DNA of 64,000 nucleotides, taken from contig NC_052176.1 in NCBI RefSeq assembly GCF_902713615.1, forward strand, positions 11,422,243-11,486,242, given 5' to 3'. Source of the stretch: Scyliorhinus canicula. Lineage: Eukaryota. Position 1 is the stretch's first letter; the number at the start of each line of letters is the position of its first letter. The translations under genes were made by a program, and so were the position numbers. Shown here piece after piece: positions 13,984 to 15,188 of this stretch. The notes below the pieces were generated by a model. That model did not search any database. It was given only the letters and a program-made list of their open reading frames with translations, and was not told the DNA's origin.

Positions 13984-14278
13984 ACATAGAACATAACAGC
14001 GCAGTACGGGCCCTTCAGCCCTCGATGTTGCGCCGACCCGTGAAACCATCTGAAGCCTATCTGACCTACACTATTCCATTTTCATCCATATGTCTATCCA
14101 GTGACCACTTAAATGCCCTTAAAGTTGGCGAGTCTACTACTGTTGCAAGCAGGGCGTTCCACACCCCTACTACTCACTGAGTAAAGACATCTGACGTCTG
14201 TCCTATATCTACCACCCCTCAATTTAAAGCTATGTCCCCTCGTGTTGGTCATCACCATCCGAGGAAAAAGACTCTCAC
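13984..14278 (-). mobile_element. 5'-truncated CR1 LINE 3' end fused to H3
   Basis: Encodes [22 protein letters not shown] (CR1 ORF2 C-terminus, compare 53890-54507) and ends in the tail ...GCTGTTATGTTCTATG. Confidence 0.9.
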
Positions 14279-14600
14279 TGTCCTCAAAGAGCCCCACCAG
14301 GTAAGCCTCGCTGGCCTCCTGCAGGGCCATGACGGCGGAGCTCTGGAAGCGCAGGTCTGTCTTGAAGTCCTGAGCGATCTCTCGCACCAGGCGCTGGAAG
14401 GGCAGTTTGCGGATCAGCAGCTCGGTGGATTTCTGGTAGCGGCGGATCTCCCTCAGAGCCACAGTGCCGGGTCTGTAGCGATGAGGCTTCTTCACTCCGC
14501 CCGTGGCTGGAGCGCTCTTGCGGGCCGCTTTGGTAGCCAGCTGTTTGCGAGGAGCTTTGCCTCCAGTCGATTTGCGCGCTGTCTGCTTGGTCCTGGCCAT
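14109..14600 (-). pseudogene. H3: truncated histone H3 (residues 1-106) fused in frame to CR1 ORF2 sequence; 163-aa chimeric ORF
   Basis: 14279-14600 matches the H3 at 1823 up to GLFED. The promoter at 14601-14920 is retained. No H3 3' end or stem-loop follows. Confidence 0.9.
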
Positions 14601-15188
14601 GATGTGAAACTGGGTGAAAGGCAGAGGCTGAGAATGCTGGCGCCTCTCTCTCACTGCCTATTTAAGGCATTATAGTGACCGCCCTCTTCTCCTCATTGGA
14701 TGCAGCCCGATCCCGTGGGCAAGTTTGAAAAGAGCGATGGGCGGCAAGGATATCAGGGCCCTGATTGGTGGACCTGCAACTGACAAACCATCAATTTCAA
14801 AAAGCCCGCCAATTTCACAGGGACAGGGAACGGATATTTGAGAACATCGAAAAAAAATCAATCTCGAGTTGTGAATATCAAAAACATCTCAATGATTCCT
14901 GCTCCCATTTTTGTCTCGGATGGGACTCACCCGAGATTAGATGAATAAAACCGAGCAGGCACAGAATTCCCGCTCTCATTACAATGTCCGTGTTCACTAT
15001 GTGCGGTTACAGGGCTGACTGCGGAGAAAGGTTGTTTCAGACTGTACAGCAAATCTATATCGCCTTCTAATGAGAAAACAAATGAATGATAGGAAATCGA
15101 GGTATCCAAGTTCTGACTCGCTAAACCAGCTCCATGGGTTATTCTGCTTCCATTCTAAGGTCAGTGCTCTCAATGTGAGGGTTTGGGC

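Follow-up and report, generated by a model that had tools for sequence, protein, structure and literature searches.

The minus strand of the 64,000-nucleotide stretch of Scyliorhinus canicula DNA analysed here (hereafter the window), which is part of a vertebrate histone cluster, carries a histone H3 gene copy whose coding sequence breaks off after residue 106 and continues in frame into the 3′ end of a LINE. We think it probable that this is an old, 3′-truncated pseudogene produced by a deletion that accompanied insertion of the LINE, whose H3 part was subsequently rewritten by gene conversion and which most likely has no function.

Structure of the truncated H3 copy

When the window was compared with itself, the segment 14279..14930 (minus strand) matched the intact H3 gene and its promoter at 1494-2144 with 97.4% identity over 652 nt, and no match to 14279-14930 other than 1494-2144 was found in the window (Table 1). 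With the exception of a mismatch at 14645, all differences revealed by the alignment to the intact gene lie distal to 14826: the distal promoter (14826-14930) is ~15% diverged from the intact copy, and the proximal ~547 nt, which comprise the promoter boxes, the 5′ UTR and 321 nt of coding sequence, contain that one mismatch. The CCAAT boxes and the TATA-like box are thus as in the intact copy, everything from 14826 to the ATG being identical except for this one base, in agreement with the original prediction that promoter, 5′ UTR and the codons for residues 1-106 are essentially those of the functional gene.

Table 1. Features of the truncated H3 copy, its joint with the LINE and its neighbourhood (positions in the window)
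Feature	Position	Strand	Remarks
H3 coding part	14279..14600	-	ATG 14600..14598; Met, residues 1-106 and first base of the next codon; 100% identical to 1823-2144
H3 promoter and 5′ UTR	14601..14930	-	homologous to 1494-1822 of the intact copy
GGACA microhomology	14279..14283	-	H3 (GAG GAC A) versus LINE family (GTG GAC A); breakpoint somewhere inside
5′-truncated CR1-like LINE 3′ end	13984..14278	-	last ~60 ORF2 codons, 3′ UTR and non-poly(A) tail ...ATGTTCTATGTATC; ~295 nt
Stop codon of the 163-aa chimeric ORF	14109..14111	-	in the shifted LINE frame
Satellite-like spacer, LINE tail to module A	13948..13983	.	weak likeness to the satellite at 18.8-19.7, 27.3-28.3 and 60.7-61.0 kb
Module A copy end (CCAAT-box part of a promoter-like module)	13726..13947	-	one of five copies in the window
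H4 of the truncated-H3 unit	15239..15550	-	encodes V57L where the H4 at 35100-35411 is canonical; located upstream of the truncated H3
5′-truncated H1	16228..16560	-	upstream of H4; K/A/P-rich C-terminal tail only (16300-16560), ~85 codons; no N-terminal or globular part

The chimeric open reading frame occupies 14109..14654 (minus strand) in the ORF list, and its ATG at 14600 gives a product of 163 aa that consists of Met, H3 residues 1-106 and 56 LINE-derived residues, the H3 homology ending exactly at 14279. Its match to the Pfam Histone profile covers positions 2-99 of 122; the complete histone fold (α1-L1-α2-L2-α3, 135 residues) is absent, with H3 identity ending after residue 106.

Self-comparison detected no remnant of the H3 3′ end anywhere in the window, and a search for the histone stem-loop (Rfam RF00032) downstream of the copy was negative throughout 11500-14277, that is within 2.6 kb, even at E ≤ 1. 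The intact H3 gene (1823-2233, plus strand) is followed by a stem-loop at 2261-2306 that scores 40.4 bits against the Rfam model. The nearest canonical poly(A) hexamer (AATAAA or ATTAAA) of the minus strand lies at least 2.7 kb downstream of the truncated copy; a scan for bacterial-type promoters and terminators, which is irrelevant to vertebrate DNA, returned no match. With its last quarter and its RNA-processing signal lost, the truncated copy is most likely an ordinary dead gene.

The LINE fragment

The tail of the open reading frame (SESLFPR...) is in the ORF2 frame of a LINE, as indicated by four short proteins (P0001-P0004) that were retrieved by a search of the protein collection and represent LINE ORF2 C-termini; these matches and the ORF list agree with the predicted continuation of the H3 frame into LINE ORF2 as a 163-aa ORF. 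Three independent copies of the element (L001-L003) were taken from the public ENA contigs of the matching proteins. The segment 14278..13984, which lies on the same (minus) strand as H3, aligns collinearly with all three, and its 3′ tail is shared with L002 and complete when judged against it. The tail (...GTTATGTTCTATGTATC) contains no A-run, L002 ending alike, and the absence of poly(A) combined with short repeated motifs at the very end is what characterizes the CR1 clade. We accordingly take the element to be CR1-like, a name that we assign from its C-terminal motif together with the type of tail, the fragment being devoid of a reverse transcriptase domain; the literature on the LINE C-terminal motif and on catshark CR1 elements did not settle the clade.

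Two small deletions interrupt the fragment, one of 5 bp near 14187 and one of 1 bp near 14048. The chimera follows the LINE ORF2 frame for 30 codons, after which the 5-bp deletion shifts the frame and another 26 codons remain open up to the stop; these final 26 codons are open only by chance. Because an insertion on the same strand has a 1 in 3 chance of being joined in frame, the existence of a 163-aa ORF is no evidence of selection.

A 51-aa antisense ORF is also contained in the LINE fragment, for which a look-up for independent contigs of the locus found no record. Elsewhere in the window, a longer, related LINE at 51772-54507 (plus strand) encodes Exo_endo_phos_2 and RVT_1 domains and shares the C-terminal motif of the chimera tail; at the DNA level it belongs to a different family.

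The joint and its flanks

At the joint, the LINE family copies read ...GTGGACAGTGAGAG... and H3 reads ...GAGGACACC..., with GGACA present in L001 and L003 and GGATA found at this position in L002. No target-site duplication was recognized on reading the flanks, where no repeat abuts both ends of the element; a GGAC tetranucleotide (4 nt) situated 7 nt beyond the LINE tail was considered and rejected, as it is not adjacent to the element. Target-site duplications are often missing from CR1-type LINEs in any case, and this hallmark carries little weight here. The flanks, the self-comparison and the stem-loop search agree with the earlier view that H3 3′ end, stem-loop and target-site duplication are all missing.

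A 5′-truncated LINE with a complete 3′ end, collinear with L001-L003, stands at one edge of the gap in H3, and the probable loss of target DNA is judged by comparison with the paralogous intact unit (1494-2306). A 5′-truncated LINE, an intact tail, the absence of a target-site duplication and missing target DNA together make up the signature of LINE-mediated deletion; in L1-mediated deletions, the cDNA primed at one position becomes attached to a DNA end broken further upstream, with 1-5 bp of microhomology in 75% of the resolved 5′ joints (PMC7058536). Both the GGACA of L001 and L003 and the anatomy of a joint without target-site duplication support the proposal of an insertion-mediated deletion that made use of GGACA microhomology.

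The other end of the element differs from what had been described. The LINE tail (~13984) was thought to join straight onto module A, but it is separated from the module A copy end at 13726-13947 by a satellite-like spacer of ~36 nt, which is the presumed site of first-strand priming.

The surrounding histone units

Like H3 at 14279, the H1 gene at the opposite end of the same unit is cut (near 16560), its 5′ half being replaced by satellite-like sequence, and it adjoins the same satellite as the spacer behind the LINE tail. The stem-loop of the H1 remnant (16228-16273) scores 26.4 bits against a threshold of 34, and that of the H4 gene of the unit (15163-15209) is also below the Rfam threshold. 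On its two sides, the H3-H4-H1 remnant is bordered by module A copies in opposite orientation, which form an inverted repeat (11736-12354 plus 13726-13914 versus 16881-17746). The module A copy downstream of the LINE, which was correctly placed on the same (minus) strand as the chimera, is split by a 1.37-kb insertion (12355-13727), and the rest of it resumes at 12354. Judging from the truncation of H1 and the split in module A, the truncated-H3 unit is decaying as a whole.

Several features of the neighbouring DNA may be recorded in passing. The insertion in module A contains tandem repeats of ~85 nt (13348-13685) together with a zf-RVT-like ORF, and the module A copy at 40.7-41.5 kb displays NRF1-like boxes, GC boxes and a GT donor. 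Among the H4 genes, the one at 35100-35411 (minus strand) alone is canonical, that at 555-866 (plus strand) carrying N64S and that at 15239-15550 (minus strand) V57L, substitutions that are unusual for so invariant a protein. A third histone unit (32055-35615; H2B, H2A and H4) has no H3 between H4 and H2A, which are 323 nt apart as against ~2 kb in the first unit, and neither an H3 remnant nor a clear flanking repeat was found in it. Several kb of tandem repeats at 45792-50165, related to those at 8.1-10.6 kb and 42.5-45 kb, give rise to long artefactual ORFs rich in SHTH/LRLSHTH.

Origin of the truncation

The sequence of events that we propose would have begun with the reverse transcription of a CR1-like LINE RNA from a nick in the satellite beside module A (~13984). 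After ~295 nt, the end of the cDNA may have annealed, by way of GGACA, to a broken H3 end at codon D106/T107, and the intervening DNA, namely the C-terminal 29 codons of H3, the 3′ UTR, the stem-loop and whatever followed, would have been lost. The deletion itself is deduced from the comparison of paralogous units, and the fact that the H1 end is also truncated against the same satellite could mean that the rearrangement was larger.

The last point bears on a different course of events, in which a histone fragment running from mid-H1 to mid-H3 was put, or left, in satellite DNA between the inverted module A copies during the repair of a double-strand break, with LINE cDNA serving as filler at one of the joints, as in endonuclease-independent insertion. 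That both ends of the unit are truncated (14279 and near 16560) and adjoin the same satellite, and that module A flanks the whole as an inverted repeat, would fit such a patch; we nevertheless consider it unlikely, as the complete 3′ tail of the LINE is what target-primed reverse transcription is expected to leave, the H1 joint contains no LINE, and the two truncations may be unrelated.

The same end state could also have been reached in two steps, through insertion of a 5′-truncated LINE followed either by an unrelated deletion or by recombination between LINEs of the same family that removed the 3′ part of H3 up to the satellite. The cluster is certainly rich in LINE and SINE fragments and in rearrangements, but an unrelated deletion would have had to begin exactly where the intact LINE tail ends, while the fragment is collinear with the family copies and shows no hybrid break; with a single event requiring fewer steps, a two-step history seems to us quite improbable.

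Age of the truncation and probable gene conversion

Relative to the 219 alignment columns in which the three family copies agree, the LINE fragment has accumulated 15 private substitutions and 2 deletions, a divergence of ~7%, part of which may reflect a subfamily difference, given that L001-L003 come from unidentified contigs. The 5-bp deletion most likely postdates the insertion, because it breaks ORF2. The occurrence of the LINE-bearing part in a DNA run labelled as a different organism (see below) likewise points to an old event. By comparison, the H3 part is only ~0.2% diverged. The neighbouring H4 gene offers a second yardstick: between the truncated-H3 unit and the intact-H3 unit, 6 of the 312 nucleotides of the H4 coding sequence differ, and the H4 region as a whole is 5.6% different. 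At the rate of the H4 coding sequence, the Poisson probability of finding no more than one mismatch in 547 nt is, by our own estimate, about 3e-4.

The identity of the H3 copy spans non-coding and synonymous sites alike, and selection was rejected as its cause, these sites being equally identical. The truncation is probably old, and the H3 part and proximal promoter appear to have been overwritten later by gene conversion with an intact H3 as donor, and the LINE necessarily marks where the converted tract stops. The original description of an intact H3 promoter is therefore borne out as regards its identity to the working gene, but, given the contrast between LINE (~7%) and H3 (~0.2%), gene conversion acting on a pseudogene that was already old accounts better for its intactness. 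Since the event, the LINE piece would have been left to decay, with conversion from intact H3 copies maintaining the H3 coding part and the proximal promoter.

Expression and coding potential

The promoter of the H3 copy should be competent and may still fire. Transcripts lacking the stem-loop are not cleavable by the histone 3′ processing machinery, and because neither a stem-loop nor a nearby poly(A) signal is present, read-through into module A is expected. Such transcripts would extend across the LINE as far as the split module and are expected to be unstable; a stable mRNA is not to be expected from the chimera. A protein, if any were made, would be devoid of the end of α2, L2 and α3 and could not form the histone fold. 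The residues past 106, which correspond to the last third of α2, L2 and α3, build the four-helix bundle between H3 and H3′ and supply part of the handshake with H4; the claim that the predicted product ends without the four-helix-bundle part is thus consistent with both established nucleosome structure and a Pfam match that stops at position 99 of 122.

Two readings nonetheless grant the copy some activity. According to one, the conversion-refreshed promoter transcribes the truncated copy, and the read-through RNA either encodes a non-nucleosomal, tail-bearing H3(1-106) fusion or interferes, on the sense strand, with transcription from the downstream module A promoter. We hold this to be highly unlikely; if it were true, a “zombie” histone promoter would be kept active by gene conversion although its unit is dead.

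According to the other, which seems even further from likely, the chimera is expressed as a decoy that consists of H3(1-106) and the 56-residue tail and, with its modifiable N-terminal tail but unable to enter nucleosomes, competes for chaperones or for the readers and writers of that tail. In its favour, hardly anything distinguishes the promoter and 5′ UTR from those of the working gene, the frame is open, and shares of 0.38-0.57 of the words sampled from the LINE-bearing stretch occur in many small sequencing runs from several studies, whose kind was guessed to be RNA. These word shares are hints only, however, and fit transcription as well as open-chromatin DNA libraries, which runs of guessed kind could equally be. 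The identity at synonymous and non-coding sites is, moreover, a signature of gene conversion rather than of selection, the tail encoded by the LINE has undergone a frameshift and ~7% decay, stem-loop and nearby poly(A) signal are wanting, and instability is to be expected of a histone fold that ends at residue 106. The chimeric ORF is also missing from a collection of 15 billion proteins, in which a search with the tail retrieved LINE fragments only and no second H3-LINE chimera. Both expression and a decoy role of the chimera thus seem unlikely on the features of the locus.

Genomic runs bear on the reality of the joint. Of the words sampled across 13930-14420, a share of 0.64-0.68 is present in DNA runs of organism A, the words of the junction itself being inseparable from the rest; a run labelled as DNA of organism B holds 0.60, and since H3-only words could account for at most 0.24, this run must also hold the LINE-bearing part. 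A false join made by the assembler is conceivable in that H3 and the LINE are both repeated in the genome. It is hardly credible when the two have only 5 nt in common at the joint, much less than an assembler needs for an overlap, the anatomy of the joint is exactly that of a biological LINE 5′ junction, and most of the sampled words, inseparable though those of the junction are, turn up in DNA runs from two samples and under a second organism label.

An origin as a template-switch retrocopy was rejected, the H3 part having a promoter (~330 nt upstream of the ATG are homologous) and a syntenic H4 neighbour. Given that promoter and an H4 order as in the intact unit, the H3 part is genomic DNA rather than a copy of an mRNA.

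Discussion

If, as we consider probable, the truncated H3 copy arose through an old LINE insertion-mediated deletion, it provides a clean, base-resolved germline case in which a non-L1 (CR1-like) LINE deleted part of a gene by way of a microhomology joint in a cartilaginous fish. It would also illustrate how gene conversion can keep the remaining half of a dead histone gene, along with its promoter, identical to live copies, and it calls for caution in annotation, as a member of a multigene family may possess an intact promoter and an open frame without being under selection or having a function. Should the copy be transcribed, it would constitute a natural test of the fate of histone transcripts without a stem-loop.

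Three known systems invite comparison. Template-switch chimeric retrocopies resemble the present locus in that the 5′ part of a cellular gene is followed, head-to-tail, by the 3′ part of a LINE and the switch point shows microhomology, but here the H3 copy carries its own promoter and a genomic H4 neighbour. With the pseudogenes of replication-dependent histones found in vertebrate clusters, the locus shares a truncated copy within a cluster, the lack of a 3′ stem-loop and damaged neighbours in the unit; unlike in the usual histone pseudogene, what survives, ~225 nt of promoter among it, is near-identical to the working copy, apparently through gene conversion, and the open reading frame is extended in frame by LINE ORF2. 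L1 insertion-mediated deletions, as described in human cells, cancers and primate genomes, have in common with it a 5′-truncated element with an intact 3′ end, the absence of a target-site duplication, 1-5 bp of 5′ microhomology and a loss, here probable, of the target from the priming site up to a break lying upstream (PMC7058536), whereas the event considered here involves a CR1-like LINE with a non-poly(A) tail and is old and fixed in the germline of a cartilaginous fish.
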